Below are positions 2-21,166 of a stretch of 64,000 nucleotides of DNA, in pieces. Numbering within the stretch: the first letter of the stretch is position 1; every line of letters starts with the position of its first letter. Below the pieces are notes generated by a model, which searched no databases, had not been told where the DNA came from, and saw only the letters and a list, made by a program, of their open reading frames with translations. The stretch is taken from the sequence record ON287376.1. One strand, written 5' to 3'. Made by a program: the position numbers and the translations under genes.

Positions 2-1675
2 CGTTTCAAGCGTGACATCTCTAGCGGCTCTATCGAAACCGATTGGTTCTTCGACCCGGTAATGGATATCGCAGACTATAGTCTGACGCTGAACAAAGCC
101 GCTGAGTGGGTGGAAGTAAAAGGTACTGAGTGGTGGCAGACCTGGTTACCAAGCACCCCAGCTTACATTACCATGGTAGGTCCTGGCGGTGTTCGTACCT
201 GTAAGAAACCAGTATGGCTCCGTATGTGGGCCGTGAGCTGGGACTTCCGTGGTACTTTGCTGGACTTCACTGGAGGTGCTGTCGGTCAGACCAACGTCTC
301 CGTAGTCTACGGTCACCGTAACTCTACACTGAGCAACCTGCGCATGTTATCCAGCGTAGCGTTGAAGCAGAAGGGTATCAACGTCTCAACGACTTCCGGT
401 AACATTCACGGTCTGTCCGCAGCGTTCCTGAACTTCAACAACATCTCAATCAACCGTCACGACATTGCTTGGGATCTGGGCGATAACTGCTACCTGAACA
501 ACTGGTTCCAGTGCACCACTCAAGGCTGCCGTCTGCCAATCAACGCACCTAAGTCTGCAAACGCCGGGGAAACTCTGGTATGGACTAAGTGTATCTTCGG
601 TGACGGCATTGGCCCTTACCTGAACACAGGTATGTCGATGACCTTCCACGGTTGCTCGTTCGACTACTCCGGTTACAAAACCGAAGCTGACCAATTGGCT
701 AATGCTGAGAAAGAAGGTTTATTCAATATCGATAACTGTACGGTTCTGATGTATGGTTGCGGTAACGAATATGGTAACTTGAACAGCCGGTGGTCAGGTC
801 CAGTATGGAGAGGTACGGGTATTATCAAGCTCTACGAATGTCAGTGGATCTTGACTACTTCAAGTACAGTCGAACCTAACGAAACGACACCGCACTTGGT
901 ACACAACTACTACTTCGAAGATACTTCTGCCGACCTGTCGTCCAAGGTCTATCTGGAAGGGTTCTACGTCCCTAACCCTGACTTGAACCGATTCTCCGGT
1001 AGTTGGACTAATGGCTGCTTCATCAAAGTCACTGAGTCTTATCCAGGTCGTTATAAGGACATGTGGCGTAACTACACGCTAGGTAAGGGAGCTAACATGT
1101 TAATCTCCCCTAACCCTAACAACGTTGGTTACTTGACCATCAACCGTCCTCGTTGCTCTGGCGGTACTGTGGTTTCTCCTACTGAGACTTCTCTGTTCAA
1201 AGTGACTACTAACGGCAACAAGTTAGTGATCACCAGTTCAGATACTACCAAGGCACCCAAGACCTTCAGTTTCTACACTAAGGGTAAAGCGGGTAACTGG
1301 TACGGTTCTCAGTTGACCGTTAACGGTAACCGTGACATGACCGATGTACGTATTGCAACTAACTGCTTCGGTGTAGTGGGTTACGTAGCTCAGGACAACA
1401 GCATCACCTCGTTGGGCGAGCAACGTCAAACTTGGAACGCCGGTCTTCAGGGTATTAAGACCACGCCTCAGACTACTCCAGGTATGCGCATGACGCAGTT
1501 GGGTACGAGTGAATACCTGCCACTTTGTCCTCCGGGTACCGAGTGGGTTCGTGTCTCTATCGAGATGACTAACTTTGGCATTGCAGCCGGTGAAGCTCCA
1601 GCGGTATTGGAAATCACTGACTTCTACGCTTGCGAAATTGGCATCTGTCGCGACACCAACCACCGCGTTTGGTAA
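2..1675 (+). CDS. Tailspike/depolymerase TSP1 (5'-truncated by window edge)
   Basis: Frame open from base 2; beta-helix-like G/N/C-rich repeats; NAGETLVWTKCIFGD and FHGCSFDYSG motifs shared with TSP2 and TSP9. Confidence 0.75.
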   Translation, partial: RFKRDISSGSIETDWFFDPVMDIADYSLTLNKAAEWVEVKGTEWWQTWLPSTPAYITMVGPGGVRTCKKPVWLRMWAVSWDFRGTLLDFTGGAVGQTNVSVVYGHRNSTLSNLRMLSSVALKQKGINVSTTSGNIHGLSAAFLNFNNISINRHDIAWDLGDNCYLNNWFQCTTQGCRLPINAPKSANAGETLVWTKCIFGDGIGPYLNTGMSMTFHGCSFDYSGYKTEADQLANAEKEGLFNIDNCTVLMYGCGNEYGNLNSRWSGPVWRGTGIIKLYECQWILTTSSTVEPNETTPHLVHNYYFEDTSADLSSKVYLEGFYVPNPDLNRFSGSWTNGCFIKVTESYPGRYKDMWRNYTLGKGANMLISPNPNNVGYLTINRPRCSGGTVVSPTETSLFKVTTNGNKLVITSSDTTKAPKTFSFYTKGKAGNWYGSQLTVNGNRDMTDVRIATNCFGVVGYVAQDNSITSLGEQRQTWNAGLQGIKTTPQTTPGMRMTQLGTSEYLPLCPPGTEWVRVSIEMTNFGIAAGEAPAVLEITDFYACEIGICRDTNHRVW

Positions 1676-1680
1676 AATAG

Positions 1681-1704
1681 AGGAGAGGGCTTCGGCCCTC
1701 TCCT
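1681..1704 (+). terminator. Intrinsic terminator hairpin after TSP1
   Basis: AGGAGAGGGC-TTCG-GCCCTCTCCT. Confidence 0.85.
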
Positions 1705-1710
1705 TATATC

Positions 1711-1721
1711 GTTTCCTATGA
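1711..1721 (+). promoter_or_regulatory. Putative phiKZ-type late promoter (TATG)
   Basis: GTTTCCTATGA 13 nt after terminator, upstream of TSP2. Confidence 0.65.
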
Positions 1722-1751
1722 AATCTAAACAGACTTTGTAAGGTAAATAAA

Positions 1752-4016
1752 ATGGTTGATCAGGTTAAAATATCTGAGCTCGGTAAGGCTACTGTTGTAC
1801 GGGAAAGTGATGTTATTCCTTTAAACAACACCACGACCAGAGGTCTTCCTATTACTAAAGGAGCCAGTGTTGACAACTTAAGAAGTTGTTTCAATTTTGA
1901 ACACGCCTTCTCAAGTGTAGACGAAGGTATTTCCAATACCAATTCTGATGAAGTATTCTACGTTTTTACTGACTCCAATAAAGTGATGGTCGGTAAATAT
2001 ATTAATAGTAATGGCCATGCCTCTATAGTAGTCGGCGAAGACGGTAAACAGGTAACTTACCCGACTGTTAAAGCTAGCGCTAGTATGTCTAGTATTTTTG
2101 AAGCTGACGGGTATAAGGATTTAGGTAAGGTTCAGTACATTGCCGATTTAGTAAATATTGAGCCAAGTAACGATAAACAAAGTATCATTGTAGAACGTTC
2201 AGTAGAAGGCGGCCCTGCTCTCAATTTAATCTACACTTACGATAGTAGATTCCAACAAGGGAATATAGACGGAGTTCTGCGAGTAACCTCCGCCAAAGGT
2301 AAAGTTTGGGTTTTAGATATCTCAAACGGTTTGAATGTCTTTGCGTTCGGATTTGTACCAGAGGCGAACAACTTGGCGCAAACGATCAATAAAGGCGTTA
2401 AATCCCTCGTAGACATGGCTATAACTAATAAAGCGACTTACGGCACATGCTCTCATTTACTGGTACCTGGCGTCAATCCTGCAACCGGCTTAGCCAAGTA
2501 CGTAATGACCGAGACAATTAAACTCCCTAGCTTCATTGGCTTGAGGTTTACTTGTTCGACTCTCCTCGATTATTCAGGTAATGACATTGACGGGATTACG
2601 GTCAATAATACCATGTTCCCTAATGCTACAGATGCCAACCTTATTAGTTGGTACAATACTCAATCGAATGGCGTCACTGTCATTGAATGTCCAGGTAAGG
2701 TCATCGTAAAAGGAGTTGGGTCGGATACCTCTACCGCACACGGAGTTTGGGTGGGTAATACTGTAAAAGGGTTTATCAACTGCCGTGACGTATTAGTTTC
2801 AGATGTAACTATTATCGGATTCAAATACGGCCTACGTCATGATGGGGTGGATAGTTACCTGAACTCTTTCCGTAGGGTAGTCTGTGCCAGGAATTTTAAC
2901 TCGGTTTACTTTAAAGGTACCGGAACTGGTAACGCCGGAGAAAAAATTTCATTCTTCGAATGTCTATTCAGCGACACCTCTTCATCCAACATTGTCCTTG
3001 ATATTTTTGCGTTTGAGTTAACCTTCGATAATTGTAGTTTTGACTATCAGAAAGGCGATGTATTCTTCTTAGGTAAGAGTACAACTCACGGATGGGTTAA
3101 AATTACCAATTCCCATATCGAAGGATTCGATGGTTATCTTATCAACCAACCGGATAAGTGGACGGGTACCGGACAGAAGTTCTACTTCGTCAATACCCAG
3201 GTTTGGGGCGTATACGCCACAATTCCATATAGTCCACCACGTAAACTCTTCGACGCAGAATTGGGAGCATTCTACGTTAGCTTCCAGGATTCCCCGGTAA
3301 ACTTCCGGAATAAGGGTACTAAGGACTACGGGACATTAACTGGATTTGGTAAAACGAATGACAGTAGTTCAGTTACTGGCCAGTTCACTGTGAATAGCTC
3401 CAGAACCGATCCATGTTACTTGATAAGCTATAACCTTGCTGATAACCGTAGGTATCGTTTTACCGGTACAGAAGGCGTAGTATTACCTAACCCGGAACCT
3501 AGCACTGGGATTTCCTACATTACCCGCAACGGTGCAGTAGAAGTCACCTATGGCAAAATTGGGGCAGACGGGCTTCAGAGCGTTGTTATCAACTCTAGTG
3601 ATGTCGGTGCTGAGGTAGACTTCGTCTTCCCTGAAAGGGTCCCGGTCGGTCCACGAGATACCTTTAATAGCATGATATCAGTTAAGCAAGGTAGTGCGAC
3701 TGGTGATGTGAAAGTGTTCGGTATTGCGCGCTGCTTTACAGACCCAACTATGACAGGTAAGAAGAACTCTGCTGACGATAACGTAGTGATCACCACTAAC
3801 TATCCAGTACTAGGTACAACCGCCGATCGTAACTTCCTCCTTTCAGAAGCACTAGGTGAAGTAGGTACTAACGTGACCCGTATCGATTTCGTCGCAACCC
3901 CTCCATTAACATCAACGTTATGGAACGCTGTTAAGAGCGCCAGTATTGGTCTTCGTATTACTGGCTTCACCGGTTCAATCGAGATCAAACTACCAGTGTA
4001 CTGGAAGGTAAAATAA
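1752..4016 (+). CDS. Tailspike/depolymerase TSP2 (754 aa)
   Basis: N-terminal KISELG anchor shared across the array; beta-helix body with NAGEKISFFECLFSD and FDNCSFDY. Confidence 0.8.
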   Translation: MVDQVKISELGKATVVRESDVIPLNNTTTRGLPITKGASVDNLRSCFNFEHAFSSVDEGISNTNSDEVFYVFTDSNKVMVGKYINSNGHASIVVGEDGKQVTYPTVKASASMSSIFEADGYKDLGKVQYIADLVNIEPSNDKQSIIVERSVEGGPALNLIYTYDSRFQQGNIDGVLRVTSAKGKVWVLDISNGLNVFAFGFVPEANNLAQTINKGVKSLVDMAITNKATYGTCSHLLVPGVNPATGLAKYVMTETIKLPSFIGLRFTCSTLLDYSGNDIDGITVNNTMFPNATDANLISWYNTQSNGVTVIECPGKVIVKGVGSDTSTAHGVWVGNTVKGFINCRDVLVSDVTIIGFKYGLRHDGVDSYLNSFRRVVCARNFNSVYFKGTGTGNAGEKISFFECLFSDTSSSNIVLDIFAFELTFDNCSFDYQKGDVFFLGKSTTHGWVKITNSHIEGFDGYLINQPDKWTGTGQKFYFVNTQVWGVYATIPYSPPRKLFDAELGAFYVSFQDSPVNFRNKGTKDYGTLTGFGKTNDSSSVTGQFTVNSSRTDPCYLISYNLADNRRYRFTGTEGVVLPNPEPSTGISYITRNGAVEVTYGKIGADGLQSVVINSSDVGAEVDFVFPERVPVGPRDTFNSMISVKQGSATGDVKVFGIARCFTDPTMTGKKNSADDNVVITTNYPVLGTTADRNFLLSEALGEVGTNVTRIDFVATPPLTSTLWNAVKSASIGLRITGFTGSIEIKLPVYWKVK

Positions 4017-4025
4017 TTTTATCAG

Positions 4026-4039
4026 GGGGCTTCGGCCCC
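4026..4039 (+). terminator. Short hairpin after TSP2
   Basis: GGGGC-TTCG-GCCCC, no U-tract. Confidence 0.45.
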
Positions 4040-4057
4040 AATAACGAGGCTGAGAGA

Positions 4058-6190
4058 ATGCCAGTATCACCGACGAAATATACTAAGATCTCCGACTTAC
4101 CTAAAAAGGAAGTTATGGAGAACGATCAGTTTATCATTAATACCAACGACACTAAGCTGGATCAAACGAGCGTAGCTTCTCTCTACGATATTCGTGAGGG
4201 CGTCTACTTCAGTAACGCAGCTAACACTATCACCGAAGGTCTGGCCTCCGTGGACGATGACGAGATGTTCTTTGTCTACGACACTACAGCTAAGTTCTCT
4301 GTCCTTCAGTACATGAAGGTTCGTAACCAGGCATCACCTGTCATTGGTTCCGATGGCAAACAACGCCGTTTCCCTACTTATCTTTCCATGTTGAATGTAA
4401 CTGCTATCTCGGAAACGTCCGGTTACGACATCATCGGTAAGGTTGACAATTTCGCCGCTCTACGTTCTATCAAACCTACCTACACAGGTCAGCGCGTTAT
4501 CCTGGCTGGGTATTTCTCTGGTAGCTCTTTGGGATCCGGGGAATTTGTGGGGTACGCAGGGACAGCTAACGATGATGGCGGTACTACTGCCTCAGGTGAT
4601 GGCTTTTATTGGAAGCGGAACAAGACTGCCTTTACGCTCGAAGATTTCGGTGGCGGTCAAGTAGACGATACTGAAGCAATGCGTGCATCTCAGAAAGCAC
4701 AAGTAGGCCCTATTACCCTCTCCCCAGGTAAAACCTATTATTACTCATCCCCGGTAAAACATTATTCTAAAGCCGGCTGGATTGGTAACGGTGCTTCTAT
4801 CGTATTCAGAGGGACAGGTAACCGAATTCCGTTTATCTCTTCTCCGACTACAGCCGCTGGCGTTGATAACGACCGCGCAAACGGAAGTACTGCCGTAACT
4901 GGAGCTATCTTTAAAGACCTGACTATTGACGTCAACTATGTCGATACTACGGGTGCATTAGGCTTTGAGTTTGGCGAGAACACGTTAGACAACTGGACGA
5001 ATTGCGTCTTTACTAACGTGACATTCAAGAACGGTAAGTTCGATAACTTGGGGCTGCAGAATAACTCCACCGATAACCAGTTTATCCGCTGTACTTTCAT
5101 TAACGCAGGTGAAGACTCGGTTACTGTACGCGGCGGTTGTCTCCGTAATGAGTTTGTTGAATGTGATGTTGTCAATAGCGCCCAGGTAGCTCACCGAGAC
5201 GGAACCTTCTACGGAGACGGTATCGTCAACAAAGGTCGTGATACCTTGATCAAAAGCTGTCGTTTCATCAATATCGGTAATGGTAAGAAAGGCGCGGGTA
5301 TTGCGAATAACGCTGAAGATACCAAGAACGCTGACGAAGCTAGTAACGGTACTTACCTCAACAACTATTTCATTAACTGTTATGGCGGTTTTGGTTTCGG
5401 TACGGTTAACCCAGACTTCATCGCAGCAGGTGATTTGATTAAAGGTATCAAGGCTATTGGAAACGTATTTGTGAATACGCTTCGAACCGTGATAGGTATT
5501 CGTGATCTTTACCAACCGGTTCTGTTGGATAACGTTATCCTTACCCAGACCACCGGTAACGTAACCACGATTGAGATTACCAACTGCACCAACTTCCAAA
5601 TGACCGGTCGTGTTACAGATGCCGCTGGCTCCGCTATTACGATTACGTCTTCCTCGGGTAAAGTTGATTTGGTGGCGGATAATGTCTCCACGACCAAGAC
5701 ACTCAACGGGGTGGTTATTACCGACAGTAATCGGATTACGGGCAGTATCCGTTTGATCAATGCTCAACGCCGCGGCTGTACTTTCTCTAACTGTAACAAC
5801 ATGGACTTAGACCTCTACGTTGAGTCGCCTGCACAGGACGCGCTGGAAGCAGTTGGCTGTCGTTACTCTAACTTAGATGTTAAGTTGGTGAACGTCCCTG
5901 AACACGGTATGACATTGAACGGCGTTGTTGAAAGTAATATCAAGTTCAACATCAATGATGCGGGAGTTAAAACTCCATCTGCATTTTATCCGATCCGGTT
6001 ACTGGGTGTACGTAACAGTATCCTCAGCGGAGTATCGTCTTCGGCTAATGCGAATAAACCACTTTACGATATTACATCCGATGCTAATAACGTAAACGTA
6101 TTAATCGCCAATAGTCGTCTTGGAGCGGGTACTACGGGTAAAGTACAGGTTGGTCAAGGGTCTACTATTACCCAGAACAATATCATCTAG
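4058..6190 (+). CDS. Tailspike/depolymerase TSP3 (710 aa)
   Basis: KISDLP anchor, LRSIKP...GSGEF...DDGG...W linker, LEDFGGGQVDDTEAM (pectate-lyase-3-like start), then beta-helix repeats. Confidence 0.85.
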   Translation: MPVSPTKYTKISDLPKKEVMENDQFIINTNDTKLDQTSVASLYDIREGVYFSNAANTITEGLASVDDDEMFFVYDTTAKFSVLQYMKVRNQASPVIGSDGKQRRFPTYLSMLNVTAISETSGYDIIGKVDNFAALRSIKPTYTGQRVILAGYFSGSSLGSGEFVGYAGTANDDGGTTASGDGFYWKRNKTAFTLEDFGGGQVDDTEAMRASQKAQVGPITLSPGKTYYYSSPVKHYSKAGWIGNGASIVFRGTGNRIPFISSPTTAAGVDNDRANGSTAVTGAIFKDLTIDVNYVDTTGALGFEFGENTLDNWTNCVFTNVTFKNGKFDNLGLQNNSTDNQFIRCTFINAGEDSVTVRGGCLRNEFVECDVVNSAQVAHRDGTFYGDGIVNKGRDTLIKSCRFINIGNGKKGAGIANNAEDTKNADEASNGTYLNNYFINCYGGFGFGTVNPDFIAAGDLIKGIKAIGNVFVNTLRTVIGIRDLYQPVLLDNVILTQTTGNVTTIEITNCTNFQMTGRVTDAAGSAITITSSSGKVDLVADNVSTTKTLNGVVITDSNRITGSIRLINAQRRGCTFSNCNNMDLDLYVESPAQDALEAVGCRYSNLDVKLVNVPEHGMTLNGVVESNIKFNINDAGVKTPSAFYPIRLLGVRNSILSGVSSSANANKPLYDITSDANNVNVLIANSRLGAGTTGKVQVGQGSTITQNNII

Positions 6191-6196: not shown

Positions 6197-6216
6197 GGCC
6201 AGGGGTTTCCCTGGCC
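6197..6216 (+). terminator. Hairpin after TSP3
   Basis: GGCCAGGG-GTTT-CCCTGGCC. Confidence 0.75.
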
Positions 6217-6222
6217 TATGTT

Positions 6223-6233
6223 TGTTCATATGA
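6223..6233 (+). promoter_or_regulatory. Putative late promoter (TATG)
   Basis: TGTTCATATGA after terminator, upstream of TSP4. Confidence 0.6.
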
Positions 6234-6265
6234 CAGTTTCCTAAAACAATCAGGATAAGTATACA

Positions 6266-8278
6266 ATGGCCGATAAATCACCAGTTAAAATATCTCAGTT
6301 ACCCGAACCTACCGGGACTGGGATTAACGATAGCGATATCTTCGCGGCATCTCGTATAACGGGAGCAGATAAGTTAGAGACTCAACGTATCACTGTCAGC
6401 GAATTGCGTAAGCTGATGGATTACGGTAACGCATTCTCTGACTTGAACGCAGCTATTGCAGCAACCGTTAAAGATCAACAGTTTTACGTATTCGTTGATG
6501 ACTCGAAAGAGTTCGTTTACCGTTACGTGAACATGGGTGGGATTGCATCCCCGGTTCTCGATATGTCAGGGAATCCGCTCAGGGAACCAACCAAAGAACT
6601 TGTTAAACATCTTGAACAAATACGTTCTAGTGTCGGGTTCGGATTGATTGGCCAGATCAAATCATTCGATGAGTTACGAGCAACAGAACCTACCTTCCCT
6701 GGCCAGCGAGTTTTACTCAGCGGATATCGAGAAGGCGCTAACTACGGTGGCGGAGAATTCTTCCATGACGTATCGGATAAAAATGCAGCAGATAACTCCG
6801 GTACAGTGGCAGTTACTCCGGGAGGAGCCCGTTGGAAACGCGTTATCGTTGATACATCTACCAACCATGCCGAGTGGTGGGGTGTGCATTATTCTCAGGC
6901 AGATAACGCCATTGCACTGAAGAAAGCGGCCGATGCATCCCGTAAAAAGATACTGATGCTTCCTCAGGGAAGTAACGCTAACCCAATTGTAATTCGTACC
7001 CCGATCGTATTCCAGACTAACTGTGGGATTAAACTTCGCGGTTGTGGCGTCAAAGACTCAACTACAATCTCCGTTCAGATCGGGCCAGGTTACGAAACCT
7101 ACGGAGCTCTTCACTTCCCAGGCCGTAACCCCACTACCAATGCCATGGAGGCAGGTTTCGCTGGGATTGAAATAAGTAATATTCAGCTGTTAGGTAACAT
7201 GAGTACTTGCCGCGGTATATACCTTCAATACCAATATCAGTCTCTGTTCAGCTACGTTAACGTAGAGCGTTTCAACGGAGCTGGTCTTTATCTCGATAAA
7301 AGTCAGGATAGCGATTTCAACTTCTTTAACGTATGGGATTGCGGTCGTACGTCGGGAGATCGTACCTCTAACGTCGATACCTTCGACATGACTAAAACGG
7401 TAGAGTCGCCTATCGTTGCAGTCAGTACTATATCCAATGACTTCTGTAACTACCTTCGTTTTAACGACTGTCAATTTGAAGACAACCACGTTTGCCCAGT
7501 GATGGATCTTAACTGGGGTATCGAGAACTACATCAATAACTGCCATGTTGAGTTTAACGCTAACTGGGACATCAAAGGTGCACCTACACCTTACTTCCTT
7601 AAGATGCAACAGGGTGTAACTAAAATCAATGGCGGTGGTATTGCCGAATACCAGGGGATCCAACACAACTACGGGGAGCTATATCTTCGCGATGTACGGT
7701 GCTCCCCAGGTATTGTGTACACGATGCTAAACGACGTGACTAGCCGCGCCGAATTCCACGGGATAAGTTTCTACTCTATCCCAGGTCTGGCTCGTAAACG
7801 TTTCACTAAGTTCGAGTACTGTAACTTTTCTCAACCAGTTACGTTGGCGTACCCTAACTCAGATATCTGGTTTGATAAATGTACTTTCGTCGGTGACTTC
7901 ACAACGACCCATGCCGGAGCTGATCTTCGGATGACTATCAGAAGTTGCTATTTCGGTGCCAATGTAACTATTGCCGACGATACGACTAATGTGTTCATGG
8001 ATGGATGTTATATAACTGGGGATGCTAACTATGGTTCCGGTGGTGGGATGTGGGGTAATAACAAAGTCCTTGGTACGTTTACTCAAACAAGTAACGGAGT
8101 CCGTTGGGTAACACCTACGTTCAAACAGGTAGTTGGTACAAGTGCCCCGACTACTGGATCATTCAGAGTAGGTGATTTGTGTTGGAATACTGCACCCACT
8201 GCAGGCGGAGTTACTCACTGGCGATGCGTTACAGCAGGTAGCCCTGGTACCTGGCGCGCAGTCTCCATCGTTTCCTAA
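6266..8278 (+). CDS. Tailspike/depolymerase TSP4 (670 aa)
   Basis: KISQLP anchor and GGGEF linker; C-terminal APTTGSFRVGDLCWNTAPTAGGVTHWRCVTAGSPGTW module typical of tailspikes. Confidence 0.85.
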   Translation: MADKSPVKISQLPEPTGTGINDSDIFAASRITGADKLETQRITVSELRKLMDYGNAFSDLNAAIAATVKDQQFYVFVDDSKEFVYRYVNMGGIASPVLDMSGNPLREPTKELVKHLEQIRSSVGFGLIGQIKSFDELRATEPTFPGQRVLLSGYREGANYGGGEFFHDVSDKNAADNSGTVAVTPGGARWKRVIVDTSTNHAEWWGVHYSQADNAIALKKAADASRKKILMLPQGSNANPIVIRTPIVFQTNCGIKLRGCGVKDSTTISVQIGPGYETYGALHFPGRNPTTNAMEAGFAGIEISNIQLLGNMSTCRGIYLQYQYQSLFSYVNVERFNGAGLYLDKSQDSDFNFFNVWDCGRTSGDRTSNVDTFDMTKTVESPIVAVSTISNDFCNYLRFNDCQFEDNHVCPVMDLNWGIENYINNCHVEFNANWDIKGAPTPYFLKMQQGVTKINGGGIAEYQGIQHNYGELYLRDVRCSPGIVYTMLNDVTSRAEFHGISFYSIPGLARKRFTKFEYCNFSQPVTLAYPNSDIWFDKCTFVGDFTTTHAGADLRMTIRSCYFGANVTIADDTTNVFMDGCYITGDANYGSGGGMWGNNKVLGTFTQTSNGVRWVTPTFKQVVGTSAPTTGSFRVGDLCWNTAPTAGGVTHWRCVTAGSPGTWRAVSIVS

Positions 8279-8304: not shown

Positions 8305-8313
8305 TTTATTTTG

Positions 8314-12235: not shown

Positions 12236-12240
12236 TATTT

Positions 12241-12282: not shown

Positions 12283-14478
12283 ATGGCCGATAATTTCAGC
12301 GGTATTAAGATTAGTCAGTTAGACGATCCTAATCGTATTAACGACAACGATATCATCCCGTTCACTAACGATGACATGGGCGATAAACAAACACGTAAAA
12401 TAAAGTTAAGTGCCCTACGTGATCAGCTCAATTACGCCAACGCTTTCCTAACCGTACAGGAAGGTTTAGCCAACACTATCCCAGGACAGATCTTCCACGT
12501 ATACGTCGATGAAACCCAGTTAGAAGTCTACGCGTACCTTAACAGTAATGGTGCAGCAGAGATCGTCCAAGATGCGCAGGGTAATCCTTTTAAAGGACAA
12601 ACCGCTAAAGCGCTGGACTTCATTCGCGGTGAGTTAGGACTTACCATGATCGGTCACGTAAGTTCCTTTGCACGACTGCGTGAAATCAAACCTCCTTTCG
12701 AAGGTGCTATTGTAGAACTTCTGGGTTGGAACGAGGGCTCCACTTACGGCGGTGGTCGTTTCCAAGGCAATCTGTCTACGGGAGCTGACGACAACGGTAT
12801 TGTTGCGGCAGGGGACGGTTTCCACTGGCGCCGTATTAATGTCGACGAAGGCATTAACCCAGAGTGGTTCGGTTACGTGAATGGTTCAGGTAATGACGTA
12901 TCCACTACGTTGAAACAAGCCATTGCTCAGGCGGTTAACTTGAAACGTCCTGTTGTATTCCGTGATGGGGCTCAAATGAGTCTAGCGGTAGCAGGGATTG
13001 AAATTCCAATAGGTGTTGATCTTACTGTGGCTAACGGTGGGAGAGCTTACTTTGAAATCACTCACGAAATCGAAACAACCGGACAGTTCCTTGTCAAAAG
13101 TAAAAACCGAATCTCCGGACTTGTCTTCAACTACCCGAAACAAACAAAAGACATCAATGCTAAGCCGATTGTGCGTTACGGACCTATTTTTGTCGGTGCT
13201 GGATTTTATTCTTCTTTCACGGGAATAAACGTAGGTAACGCTTACTACGGATTTAAGATCGGCGGTAACGACGAAGGTTCCGCATCGTATATCACGATGA
13301 AAGATATTAACGGCGCTCCTATCTATCGTGGTATCTCACTTGACCGTGTTCTGGACATCCCTCGTATTTCCGATATCCATTGGAACTACAACATGTACCT
13401 GAACTCCGATCAGGACTACGCACAATCTCTGAAACAGTGGATTCATGAGAATGGTGAGGCGTTCCACTTTGGTCGTGTTGACTTTGCTGAAGTACAACGT
13501 ATCTTTGCATTCGGGTACAGTAAGGGTATCTTCCTGAGAGGTGAGCGTTATGCAGGTAGCGCCGATTCCATTCGCTTCACAGGTTGCGACATGGACATTT
13601 GCGTTAACCCTATCTACGCTCAGAACTTTAGTGGCCAGTTAGTTATTCGTAACGGTAAGTTCACGGGTAACGGTAATAACCTGAACGGGTTGACTGCACC
13701 AGCTAACGGTTGTTTCAACTACTTCCAACGCGTGTCTCCGTATGCACGAGTCATCTTGGATTCGGTTACCATGAATAACTACGACCGCGACGCTATTCGT
13801 ACGGGTAACGACACGGTCATCAGTAACAGTAAGATCTACTCTTACGGCTTGGACAAACAGCAACGTGCAGCAGTAGCTATCATTACCGATAGCAATGCGT
13901 CGTTGACTGTAGATGCTTGTTACTTCGATGCTACTGGTCAACAGAACCGCGGCATTACAGGTATCAGTACTACCGGTCAGTTGTTAATCACTAACGGTAC
14001 TCAAATCCTTAACGCTTCGTTAGAAGGGTATCGTTGGTTAACCGGTTTTGCACTAGTTGAAGAAGGTTGTCGTATCGATGGTCCATCTCGTAACATCAAC
14101 ACGTTCATCACCAATGTCCGTCGCACTATGTACACGGATAATCTCCCTACCGCAGGCGGTGGATGGATTCGCGGCGATAAAGCGATGTTGACTAACCCCG
14201 GTATCGGTACCCAGGCAACCCAGGGCACCTACACTATCCTGGGCTGGATACGCATCACTGCCTCTAATGCCGAAGGTACCAACCACGTATTAGGTGTTGA
14301 CTGGTTAGAGATCAGATCTCAAATTGAACCTGTCCCTAAGTTCAGTTCAGCAGGTAGCGTACGACCAGCGGTAACTGCCATTGGCTATTACTTCTTCGAC
14401 ACCACATTAGGTAAACCAATTTATCTCAAATCTGCTAACCCAGCTGTTTGGGTTGATGGCAATGGTAACCCTGTTTAA
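12283..14478 (+). CDS. Tailspike/depolymerase TSP6 (731 aa)
   Basis: KISQLD anchor, GGGRF linker, INPEWFG start of helix; C-terminal GYYFFDTTLGKPIY...WVDGNGNPV module. Confidence 0.85.
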   Translation: MADNFSGIKISQLDDPNRINDNDIIPFTNDDMGDKQTRKIKLSALRDQLNYANAFLTVQEGLANTIPGQIFHVYVDETQLEVYAYLNSNGAAEIVQDAQGNPFKGQTAKALDFIRGELGLTMIGHVSSFARLREIKPPFEGAIVELLGWNEGSTYGGGRFQGNLSTGADDNGIVAAGDGFHWRRINVDEGINPEWFGYVNGSGNDVSTTLKQAIAQAVNLKRPVVFRDGAQMSLAVAGIEIPIGVDLTVANGGRAYFEITHEIETTGQFLVKSKNRISGLVFNYPKQTKDINAKPIVRYGPIFVGAGFYSSFTGINVGNAYYGFKIGGNDEGSASYITMKDINGAPIYRGISLDRVLDIPRISDIHWNYNMYLNSDQDYAQSLKQWIHENGEAFHFGRVDFAEVQRIFAFGYSKGIFLRGERYAGSADSIRFTGCDMDICVNPIYAQNFSGQLVIRNGKFTGNGNNLNGLTAPANGCFNYFQRVSPYARVILDSVTMNNYDRDAIRTGNDTVISNSKIYSYGLDKQQRAAVAIITDSNASLTVDACYFDATGQQNRGITGISTTGQLLITNGTQILNASLEGYRWLTGFALVEEGCRIDGPSRNINTFITNVRRTMYTDNLPTAGGGWIRGDKAMLTNPGIGTQATQGTYTILGWIRITASNAEGTNHVLGVDWLEIRSQIEPVPKFSSAGSVRPAVTAIGYYFFDTTLGKPIYLKSANPAVWVDGNGNPV

Positions 14479-14490: not shown

Positions 14491-16680
14491 ATGAGCGATT
14501 ACAGCGCTAAGATTACGGAACTACCTGGTGGTTCTAAAGTAAGGGAAAGTAGCCTACTGCCATTGGCAACGGCTAAGACAGCAGGTGGAATAACTGAGAA
14601 GTTTACCGTAGCGCAGCTTCGTAAGGGACTGAACTACGAGAACGCGTACAATACCTTAGCCGAAGCTATTCCTGATACGGTACAAGGCGAGGTGTTCTTC
14701 GTATTCACTGGGCCAGACAAAACTGCGGTAGCTGAGTACCTTCGTGGCGCCAGCGGTGCTGGCCAGGTTCTGGATGAAGCGGGAACTCCTGTAGTCCACC
14801 TGACTCCAAAAGGTATGGCATCTTATCGTGTCATTCCTAACATGGCTACCCTGCGTACCACTAAGCCAAAGAACCCTAACGAAATTGTTGAGGTCACCGA
14901 GTATTACACCGGTAAAATGAATGGCGGTGGTCGCTTTGTATCTGCGGTTAATACGACCGTACCTGACGACGGTGGTTACACTACGATTCGCGTTGATGAT
15001 AATACCGTGTGGTATCGCCAGGATCTGCGTGCGTTGACTTTGTGGGACGGTGGTTGCGATAACTCGGTAGCGGATAACGGCCCGTTCATCCAGAACATCC
15101 AATACTCTCGTTCTTTACAACCGATCAAGGTACCGAGTCAATACTTTGGTATCCGTACGCCAATCGTAATCAAAGCTAACAAAGGGTTTGCTTTGTACGC
15201 AGATGGTGCCCATACTGGTCGTGCCGTTTTGCAATGGATGGGTGGTGACTTTAATGACGATACCACTGCAGTTCTGAGCATTACTGTAGACAATCCTACT
15301 GACTTCACTTACTCAGGTGTAGTTCTGAAGGGATTCTCTATCTTGGGTGGCGGTAAAGTCCTACACGGCCTCTACATGCGTAACGTAGGTTACCCTGAGA
15401 TTGATAGCCTTAAGATCGAGAACTTCAAAGGCGCTGGCCTACTCCTCGACCAAGTTCAGGATGGTTACTTCAACTTCCTGGAAGTTCAAATCTGTGGTCG
15501 TACCTCAGGGGACTACGGCGTTTACGCTGATCTGGTCAACTTGAGCAAGACGCAATTCGCACCGATCCACATCATCTCCAGTAAGTCAGGCGATGCATCT
15601 AACATGCTGCGTTTCCAAGGCGGTCAGTGGGAAGCTAACAACTGTTCCCCTACTGTCTACTATCGTGGTGGTATTGGCCTGTGGATCTCCAAGATTCACT
15701 GCGAGCAGCGTAACGGCCCGATGAGTAAGTTTAAACTCTACGATCCTAACTTTGTCATGGACACCAGTCCTGAGAAAGCGGGTCGTGTGTTTATCCAAGT
15801 AGATGGCTCCAGTTCGTCCGAAGTCATGCTGGATCAGATGCAGTCTTCTGAAACCGAACGTTTCGTTTACGCCGGTGGTTACGGTGTGGTCATGATCACG
15901 AACACAACGCGAGGGGGCGGTATTTGTTTAGCCTCTGCCAACCGTGAGTTTGCCATGACTATCACCAATAGCTGGTTGACCGACTGCTACTTTGGCCCGT
16001 CTTCTCGGGTATGGATCGACAACTGCCGTCTTGGTAACCTGACCTGGTCTTACCCGTCTTATACTGGACTGATTTCCAACACCATGATGAAAGACGTCGT
16101 CATGAACAACGACGGCTCTTTCCCGGATATCAACTTCAATAACTGTATCTTCGATAACTTCACTAACTACGTGAAGAACGTCCGTGTTACCGGCGGACAC
16201 TGTAAAGGTAACTTCTCCTTCAACGCCTCTGGCGGTGGCGGCGCAGTAATCGGTACAGTTATTGATGGTACGTTGAGCGTTGATACCAAATGGGGTATTG
16301 ACTTCCGTCCATCTGGCGCAGTGATGAACCAGGTTTACTCAAATAACGCCCCTGCGGAACAAGCGCCTAACGGCACTCGTCCAAACGGTTCTATCTGGGT
16401 TAACAAGAACGTGGTTGCCAACGCACCTGACGGCACTCCTATCTCTTGGGTTAAAGACGCCGCCGGTAAATGGGTTCCGTTTGCATTCGTTGGTACCTTA
16501 GCTAACGGCGTGGTGGCGAAAGAATATACGTTCGCTAACTTACCAGGGGCATCTTTGGCTAAGCGTGCGATTGTTACCTGTACGGATACAGCGAAAACGC
16601 CTAAAGACCAACTGATCTATTCCGATGGGACTAACTGGCGTTACGTGTCCGATCCTGCCACTGTAGTAACTAAAGGCTAA
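14491..16680 (+). CDS. Tailspike/depolymerase TSP7 (729 aa)
   Basis: KITELP anchor, GGGRF..PDDGG..W linker; body resembles TSP4; C-terminal LIYSDGTNWRYV module; 12-nt gap after TSP6 (same operon). Confidence 0.85.
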   Translation: MSDYSAKITELPGGSKVRESSLLPLATAKTAGGITEKFTVAQLRKGLNYENAYNTLAEAIPDTVQGEVFFVFTGPDKTAVAEYLRGASGAGQVLDEAGTPVVHLTPKGMASYRVIPNMATLRTTKPKNPNEIVEVTEYYTGKMNGGGRFVSAVNTTVPDDGGYTTIRVDDNTVWYRQDLRALTLWDGGCDNSVADNGPFIQNIQYSRSLQPIKVPSQYFGIRTPIVIKANKGFALYADGAHTGRAVLQWMGGDFNDDTTAVLSITVDNPTDFTYSGVVLKGFSILGGGKVLHGLYMRNVGYPEIDSLKIENFKGAGLLLDQVQDGYFNFLEVQICGRTSGDYGVYADLVNLSKTQFAPIHIISSKSGDASNMLRFQGGQWEANNCSPTVYYRGGIGLWISKIHCEQRNGPMSKFKLYDPNFVMDTSPEKAGRVFIQVDGSSSSEVMLDQMQSSETERFVYAGGYGVVMITNTTRGGGICLASANREFAMTITNSWLTDCYFGPSSRVWIDNCRLGNLTWSYPSYTGLISNTMMKDVVMNNDGSFPDINFNNCIFDNFTNYVKNVRVTGGHCKGNFSFNASGGGGAVIGTVIDGTLSVDTKWGIDFRPSGAVMNQVYSNNAPAEQAPNGTRPNGSIWVNKNVVANAPDGTPISWVKDAAGKWVPFAFVGTLANGVVAKEYTFANLPGASLAKRAIVTCTDTAKTPKDQLIYSDGTNWRYVSDPATVVTKG

Positions 16681-16688: not shown

Positions 16689-16716
16689 CCCTTGGCAGTA
16701 CTAACGCTGCCAAGGG
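16689..16716 (+). terminator. Terminator after TSP7
   Basis: CCCTTGGCAG..CTGCCAAGGG. Confidence 0.75.
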
Positions 16717-16726
16717 GTTTATGTCG

Positions 16727-16737
16727 TGTTTCTATGA
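16727..16737 (+). promoter_or_regulatory. Putative late promoter (TATG)
   Basis: TGTTTCTATGA upstream of TSP8. Confidence 0.6.
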
Positions 16738-16768
16738 GATTTCGAGCGTAATCAAAAGGTCCAGTATA

Positions 16769-19270
16769 ATGAACAACAATCAAACTAAAATCAGCGAGTT
16801 GCCTAAAGGTGCAAAACTCAAAGAGTCCAGTTTACTACCTGTTGTCAGTAGCTCAGACACCGCAATTGAAACAGAACGCTTTACTCTATCTGATTTCAGA
16901 AGCTGGGCTAACTACGACAATGCTTACTCAACTTTGGCTGACGGCATTAAAGACACTGAAGTGGGTAATACTTTCCTTGTTTACACCAGCGATAACAAAT
17001 ACTCCGTAGCAGAATACGTACGTCTCCCATCCGGAGCGAGTCAGGTTATTGATGGTGAAGGTAATGCGGTTTTTCATTTAACAGCTAAGGGAAGAATCCC
17101 CGTTAAGACAATAGCTGCATTACGTAATCGTACCCCTACGTTAGAGGGAGAGCCGGTCTACGTTATTAGTTACGACGAAACTGTAACTACAGGCGGCGGT
17201 TGGTTCATCGCCAAGAAAGGGGCTGTAGTTGACGATGGCGGTCACCTTATTTCCGTTAATGAATCCTGGTATTGGGAACGATCCGCTAACGAAGTTAACC
17301 TCTTAGACTACGGGATTAAAATCTCTTCTCGTGAAGCCGGGAAAGAAGTTTATTACGACGTCACGGATAAACTGCAGGCTGCGACTAAACGAGCCGGTGA
17401 CAAAGGCTGTCCGTTAGTTTCCAGTGCTACGTTCCAGAACGACCCAGGCAACGACGGTTATCCACGTTGGGGTTATTTCATCACCAAAACATGGGATATC
17501 ACCGGACTTAAATATCTGAACGGTCAGTTTAACATCCTGGTTCGGGGTAATACGTTTGCTGCCACCGGAACAGTGCCAATGGGCGGAACTACTCCATACT
17601 GCATCACTGCACTTAATTGTAAGTGGGGTACGGACGGTAAGTTCTTCGGTACAACGTATGGTAACCTTGTCATCGATAAGTTGAATCTGTTCAACATGGA
17701 CGGATATAACCCTAATGTTGTTCTTAACGGTATCTTGATGATTGCATCGGGTTCTCGTTTTAACTTCATGATGGCAACTAACTTCAATGGCCGCGCTATC
17801 CATTTCGCTGACTCTTACGATAACGTAATGGGTGACATTCGAGTAATGTGGTCTGGGAACCAAAGCGCCTTTGCATTAGAAGTTGGTGCATGGAAAGCTG
17901 ACAGTACGTCTAGTCGCGATGAATCTAACGCCAATACATTCTTGGCAGTAATGGCGCATAACTGCCGTGAGAAGTCGTGGTTGATTGCTGGTAGTAAAAC
18001 CAACGTTGTCCGTATTCACGATGAGGCAATCTTGTCCACTACGGCAACTCCGAGTAATCCTATCGGGATTGAATCACGAAATGGTTACGGGTACACTTCG
18101 TGCTACTTCTCTTCAATTGGCGGGCACTTAGGTGATGTCAGTTTCGCTACTTTCGACAAAGCATCTACTGTTAAACCAGTATTGACCATTGGTTCTTCGG
18201 TCACTTGTAGTTGCGACAACATCGCTTCTGGTCGGGATGGCGCGAACGTTGCAGTTATCTCAGGCGATCCAGGTCCAAGTGGCGCTGGTACTATCGCATC
18301 TGTTACCTGTAACGAATTCCGTACACTGGCCAACGCCAGGACTGCGACTACCGCGCTGGTTTGTAACAACGCAATACTTGTGGATCCTAGCTCCCCTATT
18401 TTGTCAGGGACGATCAACGGAGATTTAACGTTGATGTCCAGCGCCACTTGGATAGGTCTGAGTAATCTTCGCGTTGGCGGCGTGACCAATGTTGGGACAC
18501 CTGCGATGTTTAGTAACTGTACGTTCAACGGTTTACTGAATATCACGTTCGATAACTTCGGCACCATCCTTAACCGGATGCGCCATACGTTCGAACACTG
18601 TAAAATAAACGACGCCGTTAAGTCAGATACGTCGAAAGTCATTTTCCGAGATTGCTCACTTATTTCGACTAAAGACTTTACTATTACGGGTGCGGGTGAA
18701 GGAGTACGCTTTGAGTCTAGTCGCATTAACATGAACGTCATCATGGACAATAAAGCTAGTCTTGAATTCATCGACTCTGAGGCGAATGGGACTAACATCG
18801 CTACCAGTTCTACCGGTACAATTTTAGTTTCTAACTCTAGCTGGTCGACCGGTGCAATTAATGCTACCGCAGCTACGCAAGTTATTATCCGCGAAGGTTC
18901 AGTAATGCAAACCTTGAACGGTGTAGTTAATCTTAGAGTTATCGACTCAACGGTTGCTTCTCCGTTTACGTTGGGTAATAACGCTCGTGTTTGGTTGTCT
19001 AATGCAAACATGAATGATGTAACGATTTCTGGCACAGGTATTAACTTGGATGCCGATAAAACGTTCTTCAACCGTTTCGTATTTGATAGCGGCAAAACCA
19101 ATACCGGTGCGTGGCGTATCTCTCAAGATTGCGTTGCGTGGACAACTGCTAACTGGGTTGTTCCTACCGTTGTATCGGGTTACGGTGTACGTACTTACGA
19201 TATATCTACTGGTACAATTTATAAGGTTGTATCTGGCGCATGGAAAGCAGTAACTGAAACTACAGCGTAA
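16769..19270 (+). CDS. Tailspike/depolymerase TSP8 (833 aa from ATG 16769)
   Basis: KISELP anchor, GGGWF..DDGG..W linker, long beta-helix; start moved to ATG 16769 (AAGGT SD, downstream of the TATG motif). Confidence 0.85.
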   Translation: MNNNQTKISELPKGAKLKESSLLPVVSSSDTAIETERFTLSDFRSWANYDNAYSTLADGIKDTEVGNTFLVYTSDNKYSVAEYVRLPSGASQVIDGEGNAVFHLTAKGRIPVKTIAALRNRTPTLEGEPVYVISYDETVTTGGGWFIAKKGAVVDDGGHLISVNESWYWERSANEVNLLDYGIKISSREAGKEVYYDVTDKLQAATKRAGDKGCPLVSSATFQNDPGNDGYPRWGYFITKTWDITGLKYLNGQFNILVRGNTFAATGTVPMGGTTPYCITALNCKWGTDGKFFGTTYGNLVIDKLNLFNMDGYNPNVVLNGILMIASGSRFNFMMATNFNGRAIHFADSYDNVMGDIRVMWSGNQSAFALEVGAWKADSTSSRDESNANTFLAVMAHNCREKSWLIAGSKTNVVRIHDEAILSTTATPSNPIGIESRNGYGYTSCYFSSIGGHLGDVSFATFDKASTVKPVLTIGSSVTCSCDNIASGRDGANVAVISGDPGPSGAGTIASVTCNEFRTLANARTATTALVCNNAILVDPSSPILSGTINGDLTLMSSATWIGLSNLRVGGVTNVGTPAMFSNCTFNGLLNITFDNFGTILNRMRHTFEHCKINDAVKSDTSKVIFRDCSLISTKDFTITGAGEGVRFESSRINMNVIMDNKASLEFIDSEANGTNIATSSTGTILVSNSSWSTGAINATAATQVIIREGSVMQTLNGVVNLRVIDSTVASPFTLGNNARVWLSNANMNDVTISGTGINLDADKTFFNRFVFDSGKTNTGAWRISQDCVAWTTANWVVPTVVSGYGVRTYDISTGTIYKVVSGAWKAVTETTA

Positions 19271-19278
19271 GATAAATA

Positions 19279-19306
19279 CGATGGCCCGGATCTACTCCGG
19301 CCATCG
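19279..19306 (+). terminator. Hairpin after TSP8
   Basis: CGATGGCC(C)GGA-TCTAC-TCCGGCCATCG. Confidence 0.7.
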
Positions 19307-19317
19307 TGTTCCTATGA
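19307..19317 (+). promoter_or_regulatory. Putative late promoter (TATG)
   Basis: TGTTCCTATGA upstream of TSP9. Confidence 0.65.
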
Positions 19318-19348
19318 ATATCTACAGCCTTAAAATAGGACTAAACAC

Positions 19349-21166
19349 ATGGCAATCATTGGCATTGGGGCAGAGAACACCAGGACTTACCCTGTAGAGA
19401 ATGTCACTGCATTACGTGCAGTTGTACCTCAAGCAGATGGTCAGTTATTTGAAATGGTCGGTGCTCCGATCGATAACGGTACAGGGCGTAACCAAAAAGG
19501 TGGCGTGTTCCGTTACTACGCAGATCTCAACATCGCCGATTATCCAGATGACGGCGGTTACTTTATTAAACCGGGAGCAGGTACTGGTGTTCTGATTCGT
19601 CAGCACGAACCTAACGAGTTCTTTGTTGATTGGTGGATCACTTCCCCAGATACAGACTTCGCGTTCGCTATGACTCGTCTACAGGCTTGTCTGGTTAAAT
19701 TAAACTTAGACTACCCTGTATTGGTCAGAGCAACCGGCCCAACCTACAAGTTGGCTTCTACGTTGAACATCGACGTTACTTACGCCGACTATAACTTCGA
19801 AGATTGTAAATTCATCTGGACGACTAACCCAGCCGTTGCAGTGCAGTTCTCTGCATCTAAAGATGTCGGACCTAAACGCGTCATCGTTTCCCCACGTACC
19901 TATTTCCGGGGCGGTATCTTTGCAGGAGCAGGCGGGGTAGCTAAGGGAACTAACGTAGGGTTCGATTGTTCCTTTGCTCGCGGTAACATTGCAGGGGTAA
20001 ACTTCGAGAACGTGACAATCACTGGATTTGACCGTACCGTTTCTTACGGTTCGAATGCGTACATGTATAGCTGGACCGGGTGTCGTTTCGGTGGTGGTGT
20101 TGCAATCCACACCAAAGCTAACGCCAGTAACTTCGGCGAAAACATGAACTACCATAACTGCGTATTCGGAGATATGTACCGATTCATGGATATGGATACG
20201 GGTGGTGGTTTCTACTTCCATAACTGTAGTTTCGACTATAGCGGGGAGAATGATGCTGCGGTTCCATTATTCCGGGTATCTGGTCAAATCAACTTCAATA
20301 GCTGTCACTTTGAATGGGGTAATGCCAACCGACCTAACTCCGGTAACTCGGTATTCCGTTTAGGCGGAGATTCCACTTACGTAGTTATTCGCGACGGTAT
20401 TATCTTACTTAACGATAATGCGGCTACGGTGCATGACTACTGGTTTAACTTTGGTAGCTCTGGCGCAGCAGCGGCGATCCTCGATACTTACGTTTACGGT
20501 GCGCGGTTTAGTAAGGCATGGGGTTCTCGTGATTTCGAGATGAAGGTCAAGACTAATGGTAACGGGAATACACCTAACGTACCCGCTAACATTACGTCCA
20601 AACGTACGGAAGCCTCATTACTGATCGACCCAACCATGAACGATGTAACCTTACCCGATTTCTGGACAGTGGGTGAATTCGATGGCACTGATCCCGCACG
20701 TACTCGTTTGAAATCGCCTAGTCGTCAAGTTGTAGCTAACGGAGATGGTACTGTTACTTTCGTAGCATTAGCTAAGTCGAATGAACAGCCGGGTATGCTC
20801 TTCCCAGTAAAGGATTTAGAAGTACCGGTAATTAACTTCGATTATAAAGTGAAACATACTCCTGCCAACTTCAACGCATTCGTTACGTGGTTCTGGACTC
20901 GAGTGGAAGGTGACACTCGTGGCTACCGAGTAGTGAAGCGAGTTCAGGCGACAATGCTTGGTCAGCAAACTCTGACACAGAACCCCGACTTCCAGCCAGC
21001 AGTCCCTACTTCGGCCTATACTTTCCGTTGGCCGATTAAACCACGTTGGGCTACTCACATGGAGTTCAGGATTAACATGTCTCAGTTTGAAGCAGCTTCC
21101 GATGGAACACCTAACGGGGTAAGTATCCGGAACCTTTACCACAACTACTTTAACAGCTCAATGTAG
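19349..21166 (+). CDS. Anchor-less tailspike/depolymerase TSP9 (605 aa)
   Basis: Begins at the linker (ALRAVVP..GGVF..PDDGG); no KISELP anchor; NFGENMNYHNCVFGD and FHNCSFDYSG as in TSP1 and TSP2. Confidence 0.75.
   Translation: MAIIGIGAENTRTYPVENVTALRAVVPQADGQLFEMVGAPIDNGTGRNQKGGVFRYYADLNIADYPDDGGYFIKPGAGTGVLIRQHEPNEFFVDWWITSPDTDFAFAMTRLQACLVKLNLDYPVLVRATGPTYKLASTLNIDVTYADYNFEDCKFIWTTNPAVAVQFSASKDVGPKRVIVSPRTYFRGGIFAGAGGVAKGTNVGFDCSFARGNIAGVNFENVTITGFDRTVSYGSNAYMYSWTGCRFGGGVAIHTKANASNFGENMNYHNCVFGDMYRFMDMDTGGGFYFHNCSFDYSGENDAAVPLFRVSGQINFNSCHFEWGNANRPNSGNSVFRLGGDSTYVVIRDGIILLNDNAATVHDYWFNFGSSGAAAAILDTYVYGARFSKAWGSRDFEMKVKTNGNGNTPNVPANITSKRTEASLLIDPTMNDVTLPDFWTVGEFDGTDPARTRLKSPSRQVVANGDGTVTFVALAKSNEQPGMLFPVKDLEVPVINFDYKVKHTPANFNAFVTWFWTRVEGDTRGYRVVKRVQATMLGQQTLTQNPDFQPAVPTSAYTFRWPIKPRWATHMEFRINMSQFEAASDGTPNGVSIRNLYHNYFNSSM

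Follow-up and report, generated by a model that had tools for sequence, protein, structure and literature searches.

A nine-gene tailspike-type array on lineage-specific anchors in the nucleus-forming Serratia jumbo phage vB_SmaM-Kodama

Gene content of the array

The stretch of DNA considered here (the window) comprises 64,000 nucleotides (nt), bases 124001–188000 of record ON287376.1, whose full length of 275,052 bp is the genome of Serratia phage vB_SmaM-Kodama (Kodama); the first 21.2 kb of the window are 100% identical to that phage. Nine plus-strand open reading frames (ORFs) of 605–1299 amino acids (aa), KODAMA_01200 to KODAMA_01280 and termed T1–T9 below, occupy window positions 2–21166 amid head and virion genes, in agreement with a first-pass annotation that had read the region as a nine-gene tailspike array. 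Ten bodies, mostly unrelated in sequence, are encoded by these nine genes, with T5 contributing two, and the earlier estimate of at least ten receptor-binding modules is therefore reached within the array itself. At a probability of roughly 80%, T1–T9 form the main receptor-binding locus of a nucleus-forming jumbo phage and encode tailspike-type proteins with ten putative enzymatic bodies.

Kodama is classified in the genus Moabitevirus of the family Chimalliviridae, the nucleus-forming, phiKZ-like phages, and the phiKZ-like character proposed from the letters alone is thereby borne out. Traits of that family are also found in the genome, namely RNA polymerase beta subunit genes nearby and a match to PF12699 phiKZ_IP. 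The close relatives are 2050HW, BUCT660, Yaphecito, Moabite, Haymo and Pectobacterium phage vB_ParM-25, with Totoro more distant. A literature search returned no paper on the Moabitevirus array itself, and the Kodama paper gives virion dimensions only.

Domain architecture of the spikes

Each of T1–T8 begins with an anchor of about 95–115 aa, 21–50% identical in pairwise comparison between paralogues, which is matched by an anchor profile at E 1e-39 to 1e-43 (in full-length T1, anchor E 4e-41 and neck E 6e-26). The motifs first noticed by eye are reproduced by alignment, KISELP, NAY and F.V(Y/F) at the N-terminus and LR..P..G...GGG.F...DDGG...W.R in the linker. The N-terminal domain had been assigned to T2–T8, where it is indeed present; full-length T1 carries it as well, and T9 is without it. 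Judged by sequence, the anchor would be the N-terminal particle-binding domain of the eight proteins.

The anchor family is rare. Out of 1.84 billion proteins, an exhaustive profile search picked out 132 cluster representatives, and in nearly all of them the domain starts at residue 1, whereas a word-indexed homologue search with the T4 anchor gave only five matches and the exhaustive search supplied the rest. Nine copies are present in the Kodama genome, the ninth in KODAMA_02220 outside the window; because only 132 clusters exist among 1.84 billion proteins, nine anchors in one genome are far beyond chance. In a phage collection, the anchor occurs in 23 records, all of them Moabitevirus or phiKp24-type Klebsiella jumbo phages, and among the predicted viral structures of BFVD only family members match at E ≤ 0.001 (Moabitevirus, phiKp24 and nameless entries).

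All anchors belong to one fold-level family with a conserved hydrophobic core. A monomer model of T4 residues 1–124, built with 90 sequences (predicted local distance difference test, pLDDT, 89; predicted template modelling score, pTM, 0.73), contains a beta-hairpin, a small alpha/beta unit and a 14-residue helix. In comparison with solved folds, the best VIA Z was 3.5, a Foldseek search of the PDB gave nothing below E 1e-3, and the anchor profile met only chance-level matches among PDB sequences (E ≥ 0.6). In rows of Z 2.4–3.0, residues 55–99 of the modelled anchor were aligned to neck-type domains of other tailspikes, which hints at an ancient duplication of a small neck-type domain within the anchor and is too weak to claim. 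Separately, phiKp24 (record ~124893–125225) and metagenomes encode proteins of 206–220 aa in which the anchor is followed by about 100 C-terminal residues, neck and beta-helix both being absent; these proteins may bind without enzymatic activity or cap the docking sites that the spikes would use.

The anchor is followed by a neck of about 65 residues, with pairwise identities of 14–48% among the array proteins. A neck profile matches T1–T9 and the internal copy in T5, and precomputed Pfam 38 tables place PF27114 Phage_tail_beta in T1 and T3–T9 (eight of the nine genes); T2 is weaker in this respect and is matched by the neck profile at E 3e-22. A local copy of Pfam-A gave zero matches for all nine proteins; PF27114 is newer than that copy and is seen only in the precomputed tables. 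By sequence, the neck matches solved tailspikes at E 1e-9 to 1e-13, namely DpK2 (7lzj), Depo32 (7vyv), WceF (6tgf), CBA120 TSP2 and TSP4, K2-2 TSP and Fri1. In an AlphaFold model of T4 residues 1–195 (pLDDT 85), residues 126–194 superpose on residues 264–330 of CBA120 TSP2 with Z 12.4 and a root-mean-square deviation of 1.5 Å over 67 residues, at 43% identity. The GenBank label "amylovoran biosynthesis protein AmsF", carried by seven Kodama spike genes (T3–T8 and KODAMA_02220), derives from the PF27114 neck alone and was rejected as a misnomer.

Beyond the neck, BLASTP fails to align most of the bodies with one another, apart from three remotely related pairs: T1 with the T9 beta-helix (28% over 258 aa, E 1e-15), T4 with T7 (33% over 189 aa, E 1e-25), and the second body of T5 (T5b) with T8. 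A right-handed beta-helix is directly supported for T8 and T9 by Atlas features and structure (T8, features score 0.95 and structural template modelling (TM) score 0.46–0.49 to NosD/Beta_helix and pectate-lyase-like clusters; T9, TM 0.64–0.67 to right-handed beta-helix and tailspike clusters), and for T3 by homologues that are 36–42% identical over the whole body length and carry PF13229 Beta_helix. These T3 homologues bear other N-termini, such as P22 Head_binding in a Serratia prophage, Tail_spike_N, and that of Serratia phage 3M. Among PDB sequences, the T2 body weakly resembles the Kp7 type II tail fibre 7xyc (E 3e-4), and it also matches the T1 and T9 bodies; T4 has a PHROG tail-spike match at residues 297–416, T5 matches PHROG tail-fibre families, and the homologues of the T6 body are without any Pfam domain. 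Otherwise, PDB sequence searches gave no match for T9, two chance-level matches for T1 (E 0.5–0.85) and neck matches only for T3, T5 and T6; in T5, residues 706–781 match WceF (6tgf). The picture of tailspike- or depolymerase-like proteins with differing bodies is thus seen here as a shared anchor, a conserved neck and diverse bodies.

Anchors tied to array positions

In a maximum-likelihood tree of 45 anchors, the sequences group by array position with support of 98–100, regardless of the body that follows; for example, the slot 4 anchor precedes four different downstream architectures, and the anchors of phiKp24 and KpYy_2_45 form one-to-one pairs. Two anchor supergroups (support 92/91) each hold members from Serratia and Klebsiella phages, and the paralogues therefore diverged before the genera split. 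On sequence grounds, the eight anchors of the array are old slot-specific paralogues and not copies of one interchangeable plug, and their slot-wise inheritance suggests position-specific docking. The single anchor type of the first-pass annotation holds insofar as T1–T8 share a family; it requires amendment in that T9 has no anchor, T5b rides on T5, two nearby spike-like proteins use a different N-terminal domain, DUF7941, and the eight anchors are specific to their slots.

Exchange, fusion and loss of bodies among relatives

Compared slot by slot, Moabite and Haymo retain T1, T3, T6, T7 and T9 at 95–100% identity and carry other bodies in slots 2, 4 and 5b, while slot 8 holds a different gene altogether. 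Divergence in slot 2 begins at about aa 50–100; in slot 4, identity in successive 50-aa windows runs 100, 96, 48, 38 and then about 20%, which places the junction at about aa 97–110. In T5 the junction is the second neck, from which body b is swapped in Moabite, 2050HW and ParM-25. One public contig is Kodama-like up to nt 6556 (T4 residue 97); 1785 other nt then stand in place of 1719, and the match resumes at nt 8276, where the stop codon and hairpin lie. The resemblance to Depo32 and DpK2 likewise starts at about anchor residue 92 and runs through the neck. From this starting point and the slot 4 junctions, it follows that the exchangeable cassette consists of neck helix, neck domain and body, and that the true anchor spans about residues 1–95.

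The array has also been shortened. In BUCT660 (18283–21288 of the stretch examined), T6(1–462) is fused in frame to T8(305–849) and T7 is lost; in Totoro (20176–23991 of the stretch examined), T4(1–346) is fused in frame to T7(88–729). Totoro also has an anchor in decay, seen as an ORF of 69 aa and a stretch interrupted by stops, and a remnant of 185 aa in which the neck of T8 is linked to the C-terminus of T9. Two-body spikes such as T5 may arise by such fusion of neighbours. Kodama and Totoro were isolated on one and the same strain, although just four array genes are intact in Totoro, which suggests that the array is accessory for any single host. Slots 2, 7 and 8 of 2050HW are annotated as two ORFs each, either from real breaks or frameshifts or from sequencing errors of an older assembly.

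The spike set of vB_ParM-25, with Pectobacterium aroidearum as its recorded host, is 94–100% identical in amino acids to T1–T9 of the Serratia phages (T5b being of the Moabite type), with KODAMA_02220 and the DUF7941 pair at 96.7–99.4%, and includes no spike unique to it; either one spike set serves for hosts of two genera or the recorded host should be verified. None of the public sequencing runs contained more than 23% of the T4 words. In one clear RNA library, a 194-nt contig lies over the T4 anchor, which does not demonstrate transcription.

Expression signals

In the gaps before T2, T4, T5, T6, T8 and T9, a GC-rich hairpin precedes a promoter-like TATG motif, TTCCTATGAA or a close variant of it, which ends 30–31 nt ahead of the ATG (Table 1); the 12-nt gap between T6 and T7 has neither hairpin nor motif. 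The pattern TYCTATGAR occurs seven times in the genome, at five array sites, once before KODAMA_02220 and once before the DUF7941-only gene KODAMA_01190. A reversed control pattern occurs 20 times genome-wide, so TYCTATGAR is not enriched overall, and its placement is the striking part. TATG is the late promoter of phiKZ, with +1 at the G (PMC4666361). By this analogy, most spikes are likely to be separate late transcription units with one promoter subtype, and each expression unit would consist of the terminator hairpin of the preceding gene, a TATG late-promoter-like motif, and a fixed 30–31 nt to the ATG. A sigma-70 promoter scan returned 17 sites against 27 in shuffles; few are expected, because the phage has its own RNA polymerases.

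The motif also bears on two gene starts, for which the longest ORFs had originally been taken. For T5, the ATG at 8356 lies 31 nt past the motif and is preferred, because a longer ORF from TTG (start 8311) would overlap it. For T8, the longest ORF starts at 16721, upstream of or over the motif, and the annotated ATG at 16769, which lies 30–31 nt past the motif, is the better-supported start.

Related genes and a second anchor type

Downstream of the array, two paralogous spike-like proteins, KODAMA_01370 and KODAMA_01380, are built on a different N-terminus, DUF7941 (PF25613; PHROG "virion structural protein"), which in both is followed by a tail-fibre/hydrolase body. Across Moabitevirus, with Totoro excepted, the two are conserved at 97.8–99.7%, and no swapping of their bodies is seen. 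The DUF7941 domain also stands alone in KODAMA_01190, whose conservation is 100% across Moabitevirus, 92% for Totoro and about 70% for the phages grouped with phiKp24, and whose homologues adjoin anchor genes on metagenomic contigs too; the protein is a candidate socket or adaptor for the array. The remote ninth anchor gene, KODAMA_02220, stands alone beside a gene for a phiKZ-type internal head protein and is 96.7–98.3% conserved among the close Moabitevirus relatives. Further up from the window, two genes annotated as pieces of the RNA polymerase beta subunit flank an HNH endonuclease gene, in Kodama (1–2757 of the examined stretch) as well as in Totoro (1–4656 of the examined stretch).

Table 1. 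Coordinates of the array genes, their intergenic signals and related genes (window positions, unless given as record positions)
Feature	Position	Strand	Description
T1 (KODAMA_01200)	2..1675	+	5' end cut by the window edge; full protein 738 aa; anchor and most of neck upstream of the window
Cassette before T2	1680..1722	+	GC-rich hairpin 1680–1705; TTCCTATGAA 1713–1722
T2	1752..4016	+	754 aa; anchor ~aa 1–112, neck 126–189, body
Between T2 and T3	4019..4044	+	hairpin, no TATG motif
T3	4058..6190	+	710 aa; anchor, neck 128–188, body
Cassette before T4	6197..6234	+	hairpin 6197–6216; variant motif TTCATATGAC 6225–6234
T4	6266..8278	+	670 aa; anchor aa 1 to ~97–110, neck helix 110–123, neck domain 124–195, body
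Cassette before T5	8283..8325	+	hairpin 8283–8304; TTCCTATGAA 8316–8325
T5	8356..12210	+	1284 aa, two-body spike: anchor, neck 1, body a, neck 2, body b
T5 internal second neck	10423..10605	+	neck profile E 8e-24; aa 705–765 of the long ORF; body b begins after it
Cassette before T6	12214..12252	+	hairpin 12214–12235; TTCCTATGAA 12243–12252
T6	12283..14478	+	731 aa; anchor, neck 125–184, body
T7	14491..16680	+	729 aa; anchor, neck 115–177, body; PHROG tail-spike match
Cassette before T8	16689..16738	+	hairpin 16689–16716; TTCTATGAG 16730–16738
T8	16769..19270	+	833 aa; anchor, neck, right-handed beta-helix body
Cassette before T9	19280..19318	+	hairpin 19280–19305; TTCCTATGAA 19309–19318
T9	19349..21166	+	605 aa; no anchor; 14-residue N-terminus, neck 15–85, beta-helix body
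KODAMA_01370	24317..26368	+	683 aa; DUF7941 aa 1–147 and tail-fibre/hydrolase body
KODAMA_01380	26379..28445	+	688 aa, annotated "pectin lyase"; KODAMA_01370 paralogue with the same DUF7941 N-terminus
KODAMA_01190	record 122787–123353		188 aa, DUF7941 domain alone; directly upstream of T1
KODAMA_02220	record 194630–196807	minus	725 aa; anchor and neck; 50 kb downstream, outside the window

Relation to known many-spike systems

The closest described system is that of Klebsiella phage phiKp24 (vB_KpM_FBKp24, Maaswegvirus), a nucleus-forming phage; its shell and tubulin proteins fall into clusters with their 2050HW counterparts (PMC8386662). It is described as having 14 tail fibres, arranged in a "hyperbranched" manner, and as infecting nine capsule types, and branched fibres are seen by electron cryo-microscopy and cryo-tomography (PMC9700779); 11 of its 14 receptor-binding proteins (RBPs) are confirmed depolymerases (PMC13385381). 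Both phages have nine copies of a homologous anchor family, with mutual matches by tblastn, profile and BFVD and a place in one tree; in phiKp24, seven lie in the syntenic locus (gp301, 306, 307, 308, 309, 310 and 312) and two in proteins elsewhere. The PF27114 neck and the diverse beta-helix bodies are likewise common to both, as are the locus order (prohead protease, small genes, the 188-aa DUF7941-only gene, 70% identical and annotated "virion structural protein", and then the RBP array) and the extra DUF7941-anchored spikes (gp294/295 type in phiKp24). Differences are also evident. The Kodama array lies on one strand, whereas that of phiKp24 forms two divergent blocks; the host is Serratia (with one relative isolated on Pectobacterium); the two-body T5 is present; no Kodama spike has a gp306-type inserted domain; and the bodies are unrelated to the Klebsiella K-type enzymes. 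The array is the Serratia counterpart of the many-fibre apparatus already described for phiKp24, a real and instructive case of a known kind of system. It adds modestly to what was known by defining the anchor family and showing how rare it is and that it is inherited slot by slot, by placing the boundaries of the exchanged cassette, by a promoter motif specific to spike genes, and by fusions and losses that arose in nature.

Other systems share parts of the design. TSP1–4 of CBA120, the branched complex of the Ackermannviridae, have the same small neck ahead of the helix, and the CBA120 virion bears several different beta-helix spikes; however, these number four against nine or more and assemble via T4 gp10-like XD domains on TSP2 and TSP4, to which the Kodama anchor shows no similarity (best Z 2.4–2.7, to neck-like domains only). 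The Alcyoneusvirus Klebsiella jumbo phages phiK64-1 and RaK2 also have many depolymerase genes in a row, theirs with a broad capsule range, and the phiK64-1 S2-4 structure has the neck domain in common (Z 8.4); unlike Kodama, they do not belong to the Chimalliviridae, and neither tblastn nor BFVD revealed the anchor family in them. In the KP32-type Depo32 and DpK2, and in WceF and AmsF, similarity extends from about anchor residue 92 through the neck, that is, from the start of the exchangeable cassette. Unlike in the Kodama spikes, the N-terminal particle-binding parts of these proteins are of the T7 gp17 type or absent, with one or two RBPs per virion, and WceF is bacterial.

Assembly and docking of the spikes

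In the arrangement proposed here, T1–T8 would each start with an anchor of about 95 aa that is specific to the lineage, continue with a short helix and the PF27114 neck, and end in a variable beta-helix body. The proteins, presumably trimeric and carried on the virion, would bind and cut differing capsule, O-antigen or exopolysaccharide of Serratia and perhaps of related enterobacteria. From residue ~95 to the stop codon, each gene would act as an exchangeable cassette, while the anchor would stay with its array position. A conserved scaffold close to the baseplate would offer a separate site to each anchor paralogue, so that many different spikes would stand side by side on one virion; T5 would carry two bodies in series, and the anchor-less T9 would attach in another way or via another spike. 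For each host the array would be accessory, and it would widen or shift the host range. This side-by-side docking of slot-specific plugs is held tentatively, at somewhat less than even odds.

Several points weigh against the interpretation of the locus and of its docking. The beta-helix fold expected of all bodies by the first-pass annotation is shown or predicted by homology for eight of the ten. For T1, T2, T4, T5b and T7, it is predicted from remote homology or PHROG tail-spike matches and not from direct fold evidence, and for the T6 and T5a bodies it was not seen in the searches made. The TATG motif is short, and its phiKZ analogy is indirect. Slot conservation could merely reflect recombination sites or the avoidance of mixed trimers, neither of which requires distinct docking sites. 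Moreover, the published model for phiKp24 is hierarchical, with branching, and not parallel, and no virion proteomics, transcript map or enzymatic test for Kodama or any Moabitevirus was found in the literature.

The published model leads to the strongest alternative, in which one or two primary fibres, most plausibly T5, sit on the baseplate and the other spikes dock on them and on each other in layers. Such branching is proposed in the cryo-tomography and modelling paper on phiKp24, with gp306 as the primary fibre via T4 gp10-like domains (PMC9700779), and it is in keeping with T9, which lacks an anchor and needs another attachment, and with T5, which is twice as long and has two bodies. Against it, every Kodama anchor directly abuts its neck with no inserted domain, and the 212-aa insert between anchor and neck of gp306 has no homologue in the Kodama genome at E ≤ 1, which is weak evidence, as it applies at sequence level only and a fold-level relative may exist. 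Furthermore, the anchor family heads the proposed primary gp306, gp301 and several "secondary" fibres of phiKp24 alike, which misfits a ranking by N-terminal type. Layered branching in Kodama is accordingly rated as rather unlikely, while being a serious contender.

Competition for docking is a further alternative: all anchors would fit the same limited sockets, and each virion would receive a random or regulated subset, giving a mixed population as a form of bet-hedging. The single fold-level family with its conserved hydrophobic core would allow this, as would the variation in array size from four to nine genes with viability kept. However, the paralogues are only 21–50% identical, and the deep, well-supported slot lineages, together with supergroups mixed for Serratia and Klebsiella, argue for long-standing specialisation rather than interchangeability, which makes shared sockets decidedly improbable. 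Least credible, with hardly any weight left to it, is that T1–T9 are not virion parts at all and act as soluble lysis-released enzymes or exopolysaccharide "biosynthesis" proteins, as the AmsF annotation of six array genes (T3–T8) and KODAMA_02220 and the resemblance of the neck to bacterial WceF (6tgf) might suggest, since only the neck domain gives rise to that label, the title of 6tgf ascribes a tailspike-like fold to WceF as well, a soluble enzyme would have no evident need of a special N-terminal domain that keeps its slot order from genus to genus, and the locus lies among head and virion genes with homologues that are the phiKp24 tail fibres.

The preferred side-by-side docking can be taken one step further. 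The anchor may be an undescribed docking domain whose position-specific plugs pre-date the split of the Serratia and Klebsiella phage genera and, with the co-regulated DUF7941-only protein, form a socket-and-plug scaffold for eight or nine spikes. This extended proposal is speculative and, on present evidence, doubtful. If true, it would call for changes to the layered "primary/secondary fibre" model of phiKp24, in which fibres are ranked by the length of their N-termini, because fibres proposed there as primary and as secondary begin with one and the same anchor.

Significance

Serratia marcescens is a hospital pathogen, and phages against it are considered for therapy. The roughly 13 putative glycan-specific bodies of Kodama (ten in the array, one in the remote gene and two on DUF7941 anchors) represent a catalogue of enzymes for Serratia surface polysaccharides. 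Natural cut-and-paste points are found at about residue 95–110 of the anchor and at the second neck of T5, while the anchors are bound to their slots, which informs how a crowded tail is built and how host range shifts. In addition, the array allows the phiKp24 apparatus to be viewed independently from a second genus, and it marks a point at which the published model may oversimplify.

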